A stretch of 64,000 nucleotides of DNA from Penicillus capitatus (GCA_965649825.1 OZ287697.1:583635-647634), one strand, 5' to 3'; counted from the first letter of the stretch, positions 3,001 to 62,692 are shown. Notes: generated from the sequence alone by a model not told the origin. Numbers and translations are program-made.

Positions 3001-3400
3001 CTGTCTACTAAGGGGCGCTGATAAATGGTTCGCGACATCTCAGAGGTATTTTCTTCTTTCTCTGAGAGTCGGATGGCTCACCTGTCAAGTCACAATTAGC
3101 GTATAAATCGAAGAGTCCGCACATTAAACTACCTTTGCTCTGTAAGCTTGAAAGTCTTCCGCTGAATTGTTTCTTTAGCGCGGCGTTTCCACGCGACATT
3201 GCTCATGTAATAATCATCTGCTTTCCTCGATACATCGTCAGGTCACACTGTTTTCGTCCATCAAGACTCCATTTCATTTTGCGAACTATACTTATAATGG
3301 ATAGAAGCAAGTCGAAGACGGACAATGTATCCACAGTATATTTGCGTTGGATTGTTGAGGGAGGATATGTCTAGCGGGATCAAGACTCGTTCGGCTGTAG

Positions 3401-3882
3401 TCTTTTGCTCGATCAATCCTTTTGTCCTACTGCAAGGAAGCACGCTCATCGGCGGACTCCTCCAAACGGTTCTGGGCGACGCAGCATCGGCCCGGACGAT
3501 CTTTCTGCATCCATTGACCATTGCTGGGTGGTGTGGACTGACCACCACTGCGCTGAATGCGCTCCCTGTCGGTAATCTGGACGGCGGTGGAATGATGCTG
3601 TCAGCATACGGACTGCGATCTCTCAACGTTTCGTCGGTCTTCACATACGCGGGTCTGGCGTTGGGAATCATTGGAAGCTCGCTGGCCTTGCCATTTGGAC
3701 TGTACATATTGATCTGTGATCGAGAGCCCGAGGTCTACATTCAGAATCAGGTCACACCAACGGAGCGCACACGGCAATGGATCACTGCGATCTCCATTGT
3801 TCTCGCTATTCTCGTGTTGCTTCCGATGGGACTGTTTGATACGAACGACGCGGGTCTGGGTCCGGGAGGACCTATGATCTAA
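3401..3882 (+). CDS. EGY1: EGY1-like thylakoid M50 metalloprotease, C-terminal part only
   Basis: HPLTIAGWCGLTTTALNALPVGNLDGG and LALPFGLYILICDREPE match the EGY1 C-terminus. The HExxH-containing N-terminal part was not found upstream in the window. Confidence 0.75.
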
Positions 3883-8525: not shown

Positions 8526-9837
8526 ATGGGTTTCAACGGACTGATCGTCCATTCGACAAGAGGATCTTTTTTGCCTCTTCCTCGCAAGCCTCATCGTTCA
8601 CATCCTCAGCCGACCACACGTAAATCTGCCTTTCGACACGCTCAGGATGTGTTTGATGGTCGCCTGATGCAGGCCGGTGTGTGAGAGTCCACGCAGCAAA
8701 GAAAGAGAAATTTCTGTGGGAGGCATTGCGAGAGGCGATCGACGAAGAGATGGAACTCGATCCGAAAGTTCTCGTTATTGGTTGGAGCTTCCTCCCGCCT
8801 TCCATTTTACACACCTTGCGTCAATGCAGGAGAGGATGTGGGTCATTACGGTGGAAGTTACAAAGTCACATATGATCTTTACAAAAAATACGGCGAAATG
8901 CGTCTCCTCGACACCCCGATCTGTGGTGATGTCCTCACAGATCTTAATGCCCGGATGTGACGTTAGCTACTGACAGAGAACAGCTTCATGGGGATGGGTA
9001 TTGGGGCTGCTATGACAGGACTGCGTCCCATTGTGGAAGGCATGAACATGGGATTTCTCTTGCTCGCCTTCAATCAAATTTCCAACAACAGTGGCATGTT
9101 GCACTACACATCCGGCGGGCAATTTAAAGTTCCCATGGTGATTCGTGGCCCAGGAGGTGTGGGACGGCAATTGGGTGCCGAACATTCACAGAGACTCGAA
9201 TCATACTTCCAGTCCATACCTGGTGTACAGCTCGTGGCCTGCTCGACTGTCAGAAATGCAAAGGCCCTTCTCAAATCTGCCATCCGCAGCGATAATCCCA
9301 TCATCTTCTTTGAACATGTCCTCCTGTACAATCACAAGGGCGAAACAGAAGAAGGGTATCTTCAGCCATTAGAGAGAGCAGAGGTGGCGCAAGAAGGAAC
9401 AGATGTGACGATTCTGACCTACAGTCGCATGCGTTATACTGTCCTCCAGGCAGTGCAAGAACTGAAGAAGAGAGGCATCTCAGCAGAGGTCACTTCCCAA
9501 TAGCTTCCACTTCATTTTGTTCAGGCGTGCCTCTTAGGTCGTCGATCTCATCAGTCTCAAGCCGTTTGATATGGAGACGGTAGCGCGAAGTGTGAGAAAG
9601 ACCCGCAAAGCTGTCATCGTGGAGGAGTGCATGAAAACGGGAGGCATTGGTGCGTCACTCTCTGCGGTGATCTCAGAGAGCCTTTTTGACGACTTGGATC
9701 ATCAAGTGATCCGTTTGAGCTCTCAAGACGTTCCGACTTCCTACGCCCGTGAACTCGAAGCAGCCACTATCGTGCAGCCGGAAGACGTCATCCATGTCGT
9801 TGAGAAGATGATGGGGGTGACAGCGCACACCGTTTAG
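8526..9837 (+). CDS. pdhB: Plastid pyruvate dehydrogenase E1 beta subunit
   Basis: [19 protein letters not shown]|[35 protein letters not shown] and [11 protein letters not shown], with a transit-peptide-like N-terminus from ATG 8526. Confidence 0.96.
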
Positions 9838-55172: not shown

Positions 55173-56090
55173 TTAAGTGACGCTTCTCGAGCGTCGTATA
55201 TCGGTCGAGCTAAGCTTCGTACCGCCGCCGTCTCCAACGAGACCGACGACGACCACCATCAAAGGTGCGAAGCCGCGGCGGCGTCGCGAGACGTTGATGT
55301 TCTCGGCACCCGGTTGTGTCTCCTTTGAAACGACAATGACTTGCCAATGCTCCTCAGTTTCGGCGGCGACAGGTGCATTGGGATCGCTAAGTACACGAAT
55401 GGACACTTCTAGACTTGGACGTACAGCTTGCACGAATAGCTTGACCGACTCGATCCGCTGCTCCAGCGACTGAATTTGACTATTATACTGCTTGTTTAGC
55501 AGATATTGATGATCTAGGAGCATCCAAACCACGATGTAGAATGAGATGATCTCCACGGAGAAAGTGTGACCTGTGACACCGATCAGGAGTCTCTTTTGCG
55601 ATACAAAGGCAGCGGCTGCAAGCAACAAACGATGTCCAGCATGCAGGTGATCAAATGTCCCACCCACCACACCACCGTCGTACACATGTCCCAAACTTTG
55701 GATCTCATATGTGGTATGGATGGGTGTATAGAGTGGGGTCGCTGCGCCTAGTACATTGAGTGGTTCTGCAAAGACAGGTCCCAAGTCCTGTCGCTGTCTT
55801 TCACTGTTGAGTCGGCTCAAGAAAAGACGGTCTTCATCAGACAGCGGAAAGGGAGCCGTGTACACAGTGGCCAATCCTTTCAGTTTGGCCAACTGAACTG
55901 CACACATCACAGAGGCGATGCCGAAGAGGGACAATCGGAAACATGAAGGGTTACGTGTTGTCCATCCACAGGATTCGAACAAGGGCACGAGGTTCATGGT
56001 GGGTCGCTTGGATGCGACGACGCTGTACCACTGCCTCAGTGTTTCGCACGTCGCCTGAGTATCTTCGACAGAGTCTTCGCCTTTGGCCAT
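55173..56090 (-). CDS. PPAT: Phosphopantetheine adenylyltransferase-like (cytidylyltransferase family)
   Basis: VVGGTFDHLHAGHRLLL, LLIGVT, IVVSKET, GAENINVSRRRRGFAPL and KLSSTDIR. Confidence 0.85.
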   Translation of the reverse strand: MAKGEDSVEDTQATCETLRQWYSVVASKRPTMNLVPLFESCGWTTRNPSCFRLSLFGIASVMCAVQLAKLKGLATVYTAPFPLSDEDRLFLSRLNSERQRQDLGPVFAEPLNVLGAATPLYTPIHTTYEIQSLGHVYDGGVVGGTFDHLHAGHRLLLAAAAFVSQKRLLIGVTGHTFSVEIISFYIVVWMLLDHQYLLNKQYNSQIQSLEQRIESVKLFVQAVRPSLEVSIRVLSDPNAPVAAETEEHWQVIVVSKETQPGAENINVSRRRRGFAPLMVVVVGLVGDGGGTKLSSTDIRRSRSVT

Positions 56091-57139
56091 GTAAGGGTTA
56101 TCGAAGAAACTGCCAGCAGCTATGGAAGGTACGTTGAGGGAGAACGTAGAGCGTTCTCTGGCATGATTCGCACGCGGCTCTCAGGCAATCTTTGTCGTCT
56201 GTTGCTGTTTGGCCGTAAAGCCGAAGCAATGCCATTGACGCGAAGCCTCAGTGACCGAGGCTGCTGCGGCGATTCACCTGCAGATTTACATAATAGACAG
56301 TATCAAATCGCGACATACACTTGCTTCGCGGTCGGCAAATGGGCGCGCATTCGAATGCTCGGCCTGTACCACACATTAAGAGGAGCATCCAGGTTCATTA
56401 AGCACGTAAGAGTTGACGGGTCGCTCGGAAGGAATCGACAAAAACGCGATGGAAAGAAAAGGAATGCACTTGGACGCAATCGCGTCACATTGTTTTCGGT
56501 CACTCGGCCGCCGTCATTTCAACTTTTTTCTCAGAATCCAGTGACAACATGAAGCAGAAGATGTTGGAAGAGTCAGTGAAAGTGTGAAAATGGTGTGCGC
56601 GATGCAGACGAAGATGACAATGATGGTCTGAAAGGGGCCTCTCAAAAAGGAAAACGGCGTCAAACCACGCTTTGAAGAAAACCGGCGTCATTCGCCGTTT
56701 GTTTTTAATGGACTTGCCGATGCAATATGTGTCGAAGGTGCCGAAGTGGTTGTCTATGTGATCATCTCTTGCGGCATCGAGACCATGTTCGGACAGTCAC
56801 ACTCGAAAGCGCCTTTATTCTATGGGGTCTGACCGTCATCGATGCATTTCGTGTTTGTTGTTTCGCCTCCGAAGAGTGCGCGCTCAAGTAGCAGGATCGG
56901 AAGGAGTTATTCAGCCTTGGTGGTCCGTCATGTAGAATTGTACGGCAAAATTCTCCACGTCAGCGTCCATTCAAGCCGTTTTTTTTTCGTTTTTGTTATG
57001 CGTCGATCGCGACGCCGTCATGATGGTTTAGAATTCTTGCACGCTGGCGAACGTCCAATATCCATTTACTCGTTTGTTTGTTCGTTTGTGAAGGGATTGC
57101 GGCCGAAGATGAAGGAGATGACAGAAATCTAAAGTATCT

Positions 57140-57470
57140 TTTTTGTGTCAAATCTTCGGTTTGCGATCTTGACAGCGGTTTTCATTCTTCGCCGCTCCAA
57201 TTGTACAGGTCGTGCAATGTATTCGCTTGGTTGTCGGCGATCTTTTATACATGGTATACACTCCTCGCGTTCGTCATGGCTCCAAAAACTGGGGAGCCCG
57301 TACGAACGGTCGTCAGTCGTGTAACGAAGTCAATAGCCGCGTTGGACCCACTAAGTGGGCAGAGAACGCCGAAATCACAAAAACAGAAATGCAAGAACAG
57401 TAGAGAGGTGGACAGCCAAAAAACTCGAACTCGCTCTGCCAATCGAAATCACTTCCGTCTGCCCCAGGAC
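57140..57470 (-). ncRNA. Candidate Fanzor omegaRNA scaffold overlapping the ORF 3' end
   Basis: Four consecutive stem-loops (57347-57359, 57268-57308, 57189-57240, 57146-57174) lie directly 3' of the RuvC-III/KPFIRP end, where TnpB/Fanzor omegaRNAs are known to lie. The boundaries are inferred. Confidence 0.55.
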
Positions 57471-60400
57471 GAATGAATGGCTTTTTCCGTCTTAGCCCAT
57501 AAAACTTCCTGATCGTCAAATTGAGCATGTTCATCGCCGCATTCTCATCCCTGTCTACAGCCAGCTTCTTCCGTTCAGATTCGCTTGTGGCAGGATGACA
57601 TCCCGGACAAAAGAGAAGACGAGTACTTGCCCGCGTATTACCGTTCTTCTTTGGACATCTGATTTTCACTTTCTTTAGCTCTTTGTTGCCACAATTTGTC
57701 GAGCAACACATCTTGGACGTGTGGTATTCGTCAATGAGAGTGAGCATCACGGGTCCAACACGATTCGTCTCTATAGCATGGGCTCTGCGTTGCACGGCTG
57801 CGTTGATGGCTTTTGCGAAGGCTGTGACGGGAGCTGCTTTGGAACCACGTGAGGCTGCGGCAAAATCGCCGTTTCCAAACCCCAAAACCATCGGCCGCAT
57901 GTCAGTCCGTGATCGGAGGTCAAGAATATTGTTTGCCAGTCGAGCTAAGGCTCCGGCACGTAGCCGATCGCTCCTCATCCTCATACGTGCCTTGAATGTA
58001 TTCGTTATGTACGCATTGACGAGAACGGCGCCGTGCTGTGCCTCGGTTTTCATGACCAATTGAACGTCCAGAGATTTTGCTGCCTCGATCTTCGCGTTCT
58101 CCGCCTTCACAAGACCCGGAGCCATCGACTTGTTGAATAGCATTCCTCTGCGACGCCTCCAACGATAGCCTTGGTCATAGTACCATCGGCGACGTGTATA
58201 CGTTCCAGTTATGGCCTCATCTGGTTTGAGTATCGTGTTCGGATGAGCTTTCAGCTCCAGTTCTTCCTCCTTTGATGCCTCTGTTATGGCAGTTAATGAT
58301 TTTGGCAAAGATCGCTTGGTCCCACGGCTGTTGCAATGTATTGATGCCATAATCTCTCTTCTAACTCCACGTGCAATGGTCGTTTGGCCTCTTTTGCGGC
58401 CTTTCCTACCATTTCTTCTTGTTGTTTCTTCTGGCCCTTCTAGTGAAACAGTCGATGCCGAGCGTTCTGTCCCATATTGCATCTCTTCCAAGTCGCCGCC
58501 CGTTCTGCCATGTTCGTTCCGGGTTTTGGCTTGAGAATGATGCCCACTTCTGCAATCGCCTGAACCACTTGGCGGTAATCGGTATTCATGCCCCAGAGTA
58601 ATGAGCGCACTCTTCGTCGTTGGTATCTGTCGCGTATAATCATCCCCGGGGGGCTAGTCATCATGACAGCGTCGGGAGGTCCGCGAGAAGGGATATCTTC
58701 CGGAAGCGGCGCTACTAGGTCAACACTAGCGTCTTCGGAGCTTCGCTGCGAGTCGTATATTCCCGCGTTATCGATGATCCGCTCTGCGCCTCGCTGTTGT
58801 AAATCGGAGGTCTCCGCCTGACGAAATCTGTTAAGGCGGTCTTCGAAGGAGGGATAGAGAGGCGCGTAGAGGATGGTGGCGCGTTGAACGTTGTGTTCTG
58901 CGTCGTGGTCCGCCAGGATGCAAGGTAAACAGAAAGTCTTAAAACACGTGTAAAAGACAAGAGTCCGTGCATAACCCCCCATTTATACCGCCCTGATGTT
59001 GCGACTCCACGAAGAAGTGAATCATCGCGCCACCCGAGCCAGAGAAGAGCGTCCCAAGACACAGTCGACAAGACATGCAGCGCCCCTGCGCACAGCTGAC
59101 CCTCACAGAACAAGACAACGTCACATCGCTTGGCGACAGTATCTTTGAAAATGCATTTCGTCTGTGTCTTCCTTCGACTGGTGGTTTTTTCCTTACGTTC
59201 TTGTTGAACGACCTTCTAACCTTTGAATTCGCTACTCGCCCAGTTGTCGTGGCATATCTTTCGTTCGTAGCAATTCGTATGCTTGCGGCATCTTCGGCCA
59301 GCATTTGAAATGCACGAGATGCTGACTCAGGCTGGTTGCTCGGACATTCTCTTTGTGCAGTCTCAGTTGGTCCGGCTTGCATTCGTGGTTCTTCCTCTAT
59401 CTCTGTCTCCCTGGCCCAAGTGACAATTTTTGCTCTTCCTGGATCTAATCCGACGAATATTGGCCGATCTTCGCATTCCTGACGAATGCGTGCAAAATCA
59501 GCCGCCGTGCAATAATACTCTGATTCCAGGTAGGCCGGTATTTTCTCTGACTTCTGTTCTTCAATCTTCGGTTTTTTGCTTGGGCGCTTTCTTTCTATTC
59601 TGGATTTCCTCGGCAATGGGAGCGTTGTTTGAGTCAAGTCTATGTCAGGGAAAACGCGGCTGGGAAGCACATTGTCTGCGTAGCTAACATTGAGGCAGAC
59701 CCGGACGCCATCCGTTGTGGCGGACTTCACACTTCCGGCTTCTAGGTGCTTTCTTTTGCCACGAATCCGCCATTTGCGGCGCCTTGATCTGATCTTTCGT
59801 GCCTTTTGTCGTCTACGCCGCATACGTTGACGTTTTCTTCGCAGCTTGCCCATGATCTTTCGCCCGAGAAAGAGCCCTTTCGTGAAAGAAAGCGTCGTTT
59901 GCTCGCGTAACTTGGAGAATGTCCTTTTCTCCATGTAATCTTGCCAGAGTGGTTTTCTTCGTTGCTTCGGACTTCTCGGGTGTTTACTCCCGCCTTCGCA
60001 AAGATTCTGTCGCTTTTCTTCTTGTCTGTCGATGAAATTCTTCACTGAAAACCCAACGGACTTGAGGTATTGCTCCGGATCGTTTTTGTAAAGCTGGCTT
60101 TTATGGAGATGTTCTTCGGAGTCTCTCAGCTCCCCTTTGCAGACGAAGAGATTTCTCAGCACTCTGGCGTCCAGCGTACAGTGTTTTCTGGCGAGTTTAG
60201 ACATTGGCATGACCTCCCGCCGCAAGACTCCGATTCTTGCAAAGAAGATATGGAGGCTGAACGATTCAGGCGTAACTTTCTCGGCCATTCGAGGCAGTGG
60301 CTTCGACAAGTCGCTGTGGAGTGTCCTTCGGATTAACTCAATCTGTTTCGCCGTGTCATCTTTCAGGCCGATATCGTTTTCCGGGGGCCACCTTCCAACG

Positions 60401-61421
60401 AGTAGCTTCACCGTCTCCTCTCCTTTGCGAGGCTCGAGTGAACGAACGTAGCTCTTCGCACATCGGATCGTGGAACTCCTGATGAACAGATCGATATTCA
60501 CCAGCATTTGTTTCGCTCCATATTGCAGAACTCTCCACCAGCCGTCCCGGAGCATCAACTTTGCGAACTCGGGTGATGGCTTCAGATGTCTTAGCGAGGC
60601 CTCGTGCTCTGCAAAAACAGCGTCAACGTCATCCGCAAGTCTTTCTTCGTTCTCTTTCTGCAAGTCCTTTTCATCCCTATCCTCTTGAGTTGATCTGCTT
60701 TTCCCCTTCGTCGTTCCCTTCAAGATGCTTCCTCTATAACCCGCACCATACATCTCTGGCATCAATACTCGCTGCAGAAAATTTATGATGTCTTGATCTG
60801 TCTCTTGTCGCGCTCTGGCATTGTTAATTCTTCGAACGACAAGGCGATGGCAATGCTCCAGAAACGTTGTCGGTCTTCTATCTCCCTTCGCTCTTGCATC
60901 CTCTGGATCCGGTGGCTGCCAACGCGGAGAGATTTTCAGTCGCTCTTTTGGTCATTGATAGGGCAGTGTGAAATGTCGATGCACATATGCATTAAGAATA
61001 AACCATGCTCGATATCGAATCTTCGAGTATTCGCACACCAGTCGGTGAATCTTTTCCCGTCTCGATTGTCCTTGAATAAGAGTGAAAAGGTAGCAAGATA
61101 AAGTCCTGAACCGGGTGGGGCACAGTGCCTCAAGGTCCTCAGGAGCTGCTAACTTGTGCACTTTGCAAAGCACAGAGGCTTCTCTCTATGTGTAGTTTTG
61201 GTAAACTCCAATTCCGTTTCGGCGACCCTATTCGCCATGCCTTCGCGAAGGATCTCAAGGAGCTGTTCGCGCTTCGACAATTTTCTCTGCACGCAGTCGT
61301 TTGTCTTCTGTTTTCGCGACGAACGCTGACTTACGTTTCTGGCGCCATTTTGTTGGACGCCTCCCTCTCCGCCCCTTTGTTGTGCGTTGGCAGGAAAGAC
61401 ATCATCCGTTGCTAAGTTCAT
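57313..61421 (-). CDS. Fanzor1: Fanzor1 (TnpB-like RuvC nuclease), split into segments: either spliced or partly pseudogenised
   Basis: RuvC-I IFVGLDPGRAKIVTW (Asp 59443-45), GTYTRRRWYYDQG, VLGFGNGDF...APV, RuvC-II IDEYHTSKMCC (Glu 57727-29), Zn-finger CCxxxC/CPGC, RuvC-III VDRDENAAMNML (Asp 57547-49) and a terminal RP. N-terminal FRTLSCYL...VCEYSKIRYRAWFILNAYV resembles Fanzor1 N-termini. Confidence 0.9.
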
Positions 61422-61703
61422 TGAACGCACTGCCGTTTTATCGAAACCGTAGAAAAATTCCGCGTGCTCGACACGAACAACCTAAAGCGATTCTGTCAAC
61501 GCTGTCGTTTAACGTGGCTTTAAAAGATTGATGGTGATATGGCCCTGATGTGACGGGCATTCGGCAGAAAGAGGTGACGGTTTTCATTGGTGTATGCTCT
61601 TTCACCTTGTTCGGAATCACGTCTTGCGTGATTGCGGAACAAAGATGATTTGAGACACAACGAACGTAACGGGTCACGTTGCGGTCGGGTAGGAGAAGAT
61701 TTT

Positions 61704-61941
61704 TGGGGATGGGTATTGGGGTTGCTATGACAGGACTGCGTCCCATTTGTGGAAGGCGTGAACATGGGATTTCTCTTGCTCGCCTTCAATCAAATTTCCA
61801 ACAACAGTGGCATGTTGCACTACACATCCGGCGGGCAATTTAAAGTTCCCATGGTGGTTCGTGGCCCAGGAGGTGTGGGACGGCAATTGGGTGCTGAACA
61901 TTCACAGAGACTCGAATCATACTTCCAGTCCATACCTGGTG
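61704..61941 (+). pseudogene. pdhB: Duplicated pdhB exon fragment (copy of 8989-9225)
   Basis: Direct alignment of 238 vs 237 bp shows 4 transitions and 1 inserted T (cccatttgtgg vs cccattgtgg) that frameshifts the copy. Confidence 0.97.
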
Positions 61942-62207
61942 CTCTTGCAGTGCGTCCTGTATCCATGGACAGCCGTAAAGGTTCTTCATATCCAACATGC
62001 GTTTTATTCTGGACACCATTTCCGTCGGATCTTCGACCTGCGTGTGATGTGTGGTTTGAAAGATCGGGAAGGAATGATGCAGGTACCGAGATATCCACTG
62101 CTTGCTTCTCTTTGGCAACGACATAGACTGTTTCCATCATCTGCATACCGATGCCTTTCTGCTGATAGCCAGGTAGGACGAAGATCTGACCGATGCGATC
62201 GCGATGC
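61942..62207 (-). pseudogene. HAT1: HAT1 (type B histone acetyltransferase) gene fragment with retained intron
   Basis: [37 protein letters not shown]|[20 protein letters not shown] matches HAT1 motif A and DITVEDP. The 49 nt GT-AG intron is at 62038-62086. Neither end of the gene is present. Confidence 0.85.
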
Positions 62208-62692
62208 CTGTCGGGGAGTTGTTTCTTTTGAACCGCGTGTGTCACATGACATTCAAAGCGCCGACAAAACCCGGTAACCTTTGGATCATAAGATGAATGT
62301 CTTTTCTGGTGTGTTCGTGCATTTTTTTGTTTTTGGCCTTTCGTGGCATTTCAAACGAACTTACGCCAAATGAATACAGCCGCCGTAGTGCAGGCTTCGT
62401 TAATCGACGATTGGGCCAATTGTTGTTATCGCACTGTAAAACAAAAGATATCGACCACTCGTTCAAAAGCACTTCAGAAAGTGCTAGCTGTCATTCGACT
62501 GGCCCTTTAAGTGGACACGTGCGCAAGGAGGCTGGCTGGTTGTTAACTGTTTTTATTTGCGCGTTCATTTTGATCTTTATTCTCCCGGTTGCGTGTTGTC
62601 CATTTTGGCCGTTACGAACCGTACGATTCTTTCATTCTGCTCCACTCACTGAATGTGATATCTCCGTTTGTCTTGACTCTTCAGATCTCAAG

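Follow-up and report, generated by a model that had tools for sequence, protein, structure and literature searches.

The window, as the whole 64-kb stretch of DNA analysed is called here, comes from a eukaryotic contig and carries on its minus strand a gene for an RNA-guided nuclease of the Fanzor1 (TnpB-like) type. Between 57140 and 57470, where this gene has its 3' end, the reading we favour is an omegaRNA, or the relic of one, that would be centred on a hairpin directly past the stop codon and would end at about 57240-57260; we put its probability at roughly one half. Position alone makes an omegaRNA plausible here, and we infer both its nature and its end point. The locus would be a new Fanzor1 locus that is otherwise ordinary and works by the mechanism already described for others.

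The gene is read in two frames (Table 1) that together hold a split RuvC-like nuclease with a complete D-E-D triad and intact catalytic residues. The N-terminal frame, which contains the RuvC-I motif, matches the family profile over residues 43-460 with a hhalign probability of 99.7% (E = 1e-25); its final ~200 nt enter an extra segment of 516 nt and terminate there at an in-frame stop. The C-terminal frame contributes RuvC-II, the zinc finger and RuvC-III. When the extra segment is left out, the protein measures ~980 codons. An exhaustive HMMER search found 117 homologues, mostly 600-850 aa long, and residues E255, D313, R314, D315, C262 and C298 are invariant in an alignment of 30 family members. 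Taken alone, the window protein scores weakly, with E = 0.013 for the Pfam TNB family PF07282 (below the cut-off) and E = 0.0012 for NCBIfam guided_TnpB. PF07282 is detected in 24 of the 30 family members (best E = 2.4e-7), and the 30-member profile matches the mimivirus TnpB-like protein L79 (E = 1e-4) and SpuFz1 (E = 0.009) in the PDB. The AlphaFold model of the C-terminal half has a pTM of 0.63 and a pLDDT of 80-95 over residues 90-350. A Foldseek search of the PDB with this model returned SpuFz1 (1.5e-8), PpFz1 (1.2e-5) and GtFz1 (1.3e-4), with Cas12f behind; the first six matches are all Fanzor1 chains, namely SpuFz1 in four states followed by PpFz1 and GtFz1. The family profile, the presence of PF07282 in relatives, the Foldseek matches and the D-E-D triad thus bear out the name Fanzor, which an earlier note on this DNA had given to the gene.

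The contig is 1.46 Mb long, and neighbouring genes are broken into consecutive ORFs that each match one Pfam family (a ceramidase in four pieces, a protein kinase in two), which implies introns and therefore a eukaryotic host. In a library representing ~15 billion proteins, nothing exceeded 39% identity to the window protein except one partial copy from the same sample, contig L002. Protein collections searched with both frames and the family alignment, JGI metagenome contigs and viral contigs yielded no close relative beyond L002; the JGI scan gave a single distant match and the viral scan none. Self-BLAST of the window found one copy only of the 3' region.

Table 1. Features of the Fanzor1 locus and its surroundings, in positions of the window.
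Feature	Position	Strand	Description
Duplicated fragment	61704-61941	+	238 bp, 97.9% identical to 8989-9225 (self-BLAST); ~1 kb upstream of the Fanzor start
Fanzor1 N-terminal frame	58939-60765	-	608 codons as listed; holds RuvC-I GLDPGR
RuvC-I catalytic D	59445-59443	-	in GLDPGR
Linker	59421-58204	-	RuvC-I to TRRRWYY motif, ~210 aa without the 516-nt segment
Extra segment missing from L002	58628-59138	-	516-nt length difference; BLAST of L002 against the window and reading of the junctions
Fanzor1 C-terminal frame	57313-58491	-	same phase as 58939-60765
RuvC-II E255	57729-57727	-	in IDEYH
Zinc finger	57708-57595	-	CxxC..CxxC (CCSTNCG...FCPGCH), between RuvC-II and RuvC-III
RuvC-III DRD	57555-57547	-	in DRDEN; D313 at 57555-57553
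KKPFIRP	57486-57466	-	end of the homologue match
C-terminal tail	57465-57316	-	50 codons, not conserved
S1	57347-57359	-	CCCAC-tta-GTGGG, 5 bp (6 bp with the closing G-U); inside non-conserved codons
Stop codon	57315-57313	-	end of the C-terminal frame
S2	57268-57308	-	CGTTCGT/GGCTCC-ccagttttt-GGAGCC/ACGAACG; interrupted 13-bp hairpin, starts 5 nt past the stop
S3	57189-57240	-	6-bp arms TCGCCG/CGGCGA, 40 nt apart
S4	57146-57174	-	6-bp arms TGTCAA/TTGACA and one G-U pair
Candidate guide of the earlier note, CAAAAAAGATACTTTAGATT	57126-57145	-	no mark of a guide

L002 is a 3.2-kb contig at 2x coverage that is 96.6% identical to the window over 61941-59139 and 58627-58302, where it stops, 830 nt short of the 3' interval. 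Over 428 N-terminal codons the two copies differ by 20 synonymous and 14 non-synonymous changes, giving a pN/pS of 0.20. This value indicates a protein under purifying selection, and a partner RNA is therefore expected. Constraint is relaxed in the linker that follows RuvC-I, with pN/pS values of 0.45-0.93 against L002. The linker is lineage-specific, has a counterpart of ~11 residues in relatives, and is predicted to be disordered. A coding linker was preferred to its interpretation as a 1.1-kb intron, since ~214 codons are open in frame in both copies. At about position 2560 of L002 (window ~59475), a 1-nt insertion of G shifts the frame directly upstream of RuvC-I; it may be a sequencing error, given the 2x coverage, or an inactivating mutation.

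The extra segment splits the Fanzor frame with in-frame stops and is flanked by the direct repeat (A)GATAC. Terminal inverted repeats at its tips amount to only 6 nt (TGTCGC/GCGACA). Canonical splice sites are absent exactly at its borders and in-frame GT..AG pairs lie nearby, and the segment may be spliced out. It could represent an insertion, such as a small mobile element or an introner-like sequence, or L002 could have lost it through a microhomology deletion. The left junction of the segment (59139-59146, minus strand) and the candidate guide of Table 1 (57134-57141, minus strand) have the 8-mer AAAGATAC in common, which is probably a coincidence. Upstream of the gene, the duplicated fragment derives from a pyruvate dehydrogenase E1-beta-like exon, at 8989-9225 in the ORF 8988-9503. 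The same fragment is present in L002, where it extends for a further 93 nt and matches the gene copy at 99.4% identity; either the gene fragment moved together with the Fanzor, or the low-coverage contig L002 is a chimera.

The 3' interval comprises the last 50 codons, the stop codon and ~170 nt of 3' flank. Among the 117 homologues, the match to the window protein ends at about query residues 336-348, at KKPFIRP, and most of the homologous proteins terminate within ~10-30 residues of that position. The AlphaFold pLDDT falls below 50 over residues 359-392, and the tail codons are probably disordered according to the model. The statement of the earlier note that some 50 codons after KPFIRP are non-conserved is in agreement with both results. 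The same note placed the stems on these codons, which holds for S1 only, because S2 begins past the stop codon, with S3 and S4 farther along in the 3' flank. All four stems that it described on the minus strand were found at their positions (Table 1). S2 is built from 7 bp, a 3x3 internal loop and 6 bp around a U-rich loop of 9 nt, with arms of 16 nt that are 81% complementary; in the minimum free energy (MFE) structure it extends to 57257-57323, terminating in ...GAGTGTA.

The folding statistics single out S2 among the stems. Perfect 6-bp inverted repeats with loops of 3-45 nt occur across the window at 3.65 per 331 nt; the interval has five, two of which are S2, and at least five are present in 30% of all 331-nt windows. 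The fold of the 331-nt interval has an energy of -93.9 kcal/mol versus -93.2 +/- 5.6 kcal/mol for dinucleotide shuffles (z = -0.12). The interval as a whole thus folds no better than shuffled controls, a result that the earlier note had named as speaking against its proposal. The segment from the DRD codon to 57257 behaves alike (z = -0.04). In a sliding 50-nt scan of the whole window, the best segment around S2 reaches -21 kcal/mol and ranks at 0.26%, as one of 23 comparable minus-strand sites in the 64-kb window and singled out after the fact. The segments that hold S1, S3 and S4 rank from 5% to 90%, the best of them (~5%) lying around S1, and the energy of S4 is at chance level (z = -1.9). 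S1, S3 and S4 are therefore short inverted repeats at chance level for this DNA. The extended S2 has a z of -3.0, and the stretch from the stop to +75 nt a z of -2.2. The 167 nt past the stop (57146-57312) reach z = -2.6 to -2.8 on the minus strand (2 of 200 shuffles) and -1.5 on the plus strand. All of these sub-windows were picked after the stems had been seen. The MFE structure of this post-stop segment retains S2 and S4 and replaces S3. These comparisons suggest S2 as the sole stem beyond chance and as the best candidate for the core of an omegaRNA scaffold. S2 is entirely Watson-Crick paired and its energies are nearly equal on the two strands (-20.3 and -19.3 kcal/mol), so that nothing marks it as acting as RNA over DNA. 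A search of 56000-62500 against Rfam at permissive thresholds gave no relevant match.

Contigs of six distant relatives were recovered (L003, L004, L007, L008, L009 and L010), with proteins that are 30-39% identical to the window protein (E = 1e-11 to 1e-18). On those contigs that include the upstream flank, a DDE_3 (Tc1/mariner-type) transposase precedes the Fanzor in the same orientation. Five relatives share the terminal repeat GTGTT[TCA]CATT[TC]T, and after a further 12-13 nt GTG|TA, in the form ...GTGTTTCATTTT-N13-GTG|TA. The repeats are located at 10-41 and 3391-3422 in L004, at ~96-125 and 3343-3374 in L007, at 2944-2974 in L008, at 3030-3061 in L009 and at 3763-3775 in L010; this repeat, its GTG and the adjoining TA are kept across metagenomic DDE_3 and Fanzor1 elements whose Fanzors are only 31-39% identical to that of the window. 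The right end lies 72-104 nt past the stop in all six relatives, and 198-254 nt past the first base of the RuvC-III DRD codon in five of them. A hairpin closes 2-8 nt from the element end in L004, L007 and L008. Directly past the stop, L008 and L010 have CACGGAGGG[TC]ACCCCCCT in common.

The 3' regions of these relatives differ widely in their folding. Between the DRD codon and the right end, z values of -4.5, -2.5, -2.3, -1.1 and -0.7 were obtained, and from the stop to the right end they extend from -7.4 to +0.2. Because the presumed omegaRNA regions of relatives span such a range, an omegaRNA is neither excluded by a poor z nor proved by a good one. Four relatives gave no consensus RNA structure (RNAalifold -4.9 kcal/mol), their terminal hairpins pairing differently, which gave no basis for a covariance model. 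In L004, four tandem hairpins form between the DRD codon and the right end (3207-3420; z = -4.2 to -4.5). The terminal repeat lies inside the last hairpin, which closes 2 nt short of where this L004 sequence stops, in the TA. We consider this 3' end a good candidate for the omegaRNA of the L004 element.

Fanzor omegaRNAs stem from the 3' end that adjoins the transposon right end (PMC10432273, PMC10530073), which the RNAs abut (PMC10530073), and the earlier note expected one in the same place. In the omegaRNA of SpuFz1, a scaffold of 75 nt, encoded after the stop and before the 3' inverted repeat, is joined to a guide of 14-15 nt (PMC10432273); solved Fanzor1 omegaRNAs measure 75-150 nt, and that of GtFz1 has four stem-loops (PMC11423790). 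The nuclease of the window would need such an RNA. All characterised loci transcribe it from their 3' end as far as the right end of the transposon, so that the omegaRNA belonging to this gene, or a relic of it, most likely lies here. The spacing in the relatives, applied to the window, predicts a right end at 57357-57301 when counted from the DRD codon (57555) and at ~57240-57210 when counted from the stop. Given right ends 72-104 nt past the stop and the 75-nt scaffold of SpuFz1, any scaffold would more likely be short and around S2, and an end at 57145 is disfavoured. It would measure ~60-110 nt, with the post-stop hairpin as its core (57268-57308, extendable to 57257-57323), and the guide would start at about 57240-57260. 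The guide predicted in this way has no second match with up to three mismatches in the window, 64 kb being an uninformative sample.

Element ends were looked for in the window in several ways. An ungapped search of the 3' flank against the upstream region gave no inverted repeat. The profile of the six relative ends (TIR profile) has a best nhmmer E of 2.6 and no match in 57100-57480. With tblastn and the transposases of five relatives, nothing in the window fell below E = 0.1, and no DDE_3 remnant was present. Compared with the 3' regions of five relatives, the 3' region of the window is no more similar in nucleotide sequence than shuffles are (p = 0.16-0.97). The right end thus appears unrecognisable in the window, and any boundary would be a guess. 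S2 followed by GAGTG|TA was considered as a homologue of the relatives' right end and rejected, as the profile of six ends has no significant match in the window. The GTG|TA at 57259-57257 is a 5-nt resemblance only, with a positional analogy to the relatives' end and terminal hairpins, and the reverse complement of the candidate end at S2 has no upstream partner. At 62564-62649 on the plus strand, 1.8 kb upstream of the Fanzor start, three weak matches to the TIR profile (E = 5-56) fall within ~90 nt of T-rich sequence, none of them significant alone. Non-autonomous and degraded Fanzor loci exist in published work, and the lack of transposon ends and transposase does not exclude a Fanzor1 here.

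The absence of recognisable ends and of a transposase, together with the 516-nt segment and its in-frame stops, suggests that the window copy may be inactive or a pseudogene. On this basis it is possible, but on the unlikely side, that there is no omegaRNA at all, the stems being chance features of a 3' UTR or of intergenic DNA in an immobilised, decaying copy that has lost its ends, and any RNA gene, to erosion. The z values of the whole interval and of the segment from the DRD codon to 57257 are in line with such decay, as are the number of stems, which is that expected by chance, the 23 minus-strand hairpins equal to S2, the lack of a TIR, transposase or second copy in the window, the split gene, and the frameshift before RuvC-I in L002. 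Against it, the pN/pS of 0.20 and the intact catalytic residues speak for recent constraint on the protein, and the post-stop segment beats its shuffles, more so on the sense strand. The z test also has low power, as illustrated by the presumed omegaRNA regions of the relatives (+0.2 to -7.4).

A different boundary is hinted at by the best gapped inverted repeat, which pairs 57399-57370 (minus strand) with 62312-62343 (plus strand), 26 of 32 positions matched. Its orientation fits that of right and left ends, its sequence bears a loose likeness to the GTGTT[TCA]CATTTT motif of the relatives, and its arm at 57399-57370 lies within the non-conserved tail of the ORF. The right end might accordingly be placed inside the tail, at about 57340-57370, with a scaffold that overlaps the codons at ~57370-57500 and S1-S4 left in the flank as guide or beyond; we regard this placement as doubtful. 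It would be consistent with the spacing from the DRD codon in five relatives, and a non-conserved, disordered tail is what is expected if the stop had been lost and non-coding DNA was being translated. However, the repeat is T-rich and reaches p = 0.05 only, against mononucleotide shuffles, and it has no flanking TA duplication. The TIR profile of the relatives matches neither site, and their degenerate motif matches only that at 62312, with 1.35 matches expected by chance. Moreover, shuffled sequences fold better than the segment between the DRD codon and 57341 does (z = +1.5).

Quite improbable, in our estimate, is a domesticated and immobile Fanzor1 that would use a fixed guide just past the post-stop hairpin in a host function. 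It is suggested by the combination of missing transposase and terminal repeats with two copies of 96.6% identity beside a captured pyruvate dehydrogenase fragment and a pN/pS of 0.2.

Least probable of all is the model of the earlier note, a single scaffold of ~330 nt formed by S1-S4 that ends near 57145 and is followed by the guide CAAAAAAGATACTTTAGATT: the stems exist, S2 and S4 are kept in the MFE structure of a post-stop segment with z = -2.6 to -2.8, and four tandem 3' hairpins or stem-loops have counterparts in L004 and in the GtFz1 omegaRNA, but the model fails on the fold of the full interval, on S1, S3 and S4 at chance level with S3 outside the MFE structure, on the 75-150 nt of solved Fanzor1 omegaRNAs, and on a distance of 410 nt between the DRD codon and 57145, where no mark of an element end is found, versus 198-254 nt to the right end in relatives (in L004, all four hairpins fit within 215 nt of the DRD codon and end at the TIR). 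The note had reported no target for CAAAAAAGATACTTTAGATT in the window, and indeed no other match with up to three mismatches occurs in these uninformative 64 kb.

If S2 is the scaffold of an omegaRNA, as in the reading we prefer, the locus would add a further Fanzor1 whose guide RNA is short, from a lineage that has no close relative in the collections searched. Its value would be modest, for the catalogue of Fanzor diversity and for genome-editing prospecting. The evolutionary interest lies in a Fanzor that has neither transposon ends nor transposase yet is under purifying selection, and that could be domesticated; were that so, the locus would parallel the TldR regulators derived from bacterial TnpB.

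The closest solved structure to the C-terminal half is SpuFz1 from Spizellomyces punctatus (PDB 8gkh, 9ceu-9cez; PMC10432273). Both are eukaryotic TnpB-like nucleases with a D-E-D RuvC and a zinc finger, and the SpuFz1 RNA is encoded directly past the stop. The two proteins share only 17% identity, and that of the window is far longer, with its ~980 codons and the lineage-specific linker of ~210 aa after RuvC-I. For SpuFz1, well-conserved inverted repeats of 30 nt and dozens of copies defined the 75-nt scaffold and the 14-15-nt guide, whereas the window locus has no such repeats and no second copy that reaches its 3' region. The Mariner/Tc1-associated Fanzor1c group (PMC10530073) and the relatives L004/L005, L007, L008, L009 and L010 belong to the same protein family as the window protein. 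L004/L005 and L007-L010 possess terminal repeats and, on contigs that reach far enough upstream, a DDE_3 transposase; the window has neither, and the 3' regions are dissimilar. ISDra2 TnpB (IS200/IS605) shares the underlying logic, in that its guide RNA is encoded where the nuclease gene finishes, overlapping the 3' end of the ORF, extends to the right end and takes its guide from the flank. It is a bacterial protein from another transposon class whose RNA has been defined experimentally, and the window locus is analogous to it in position only.
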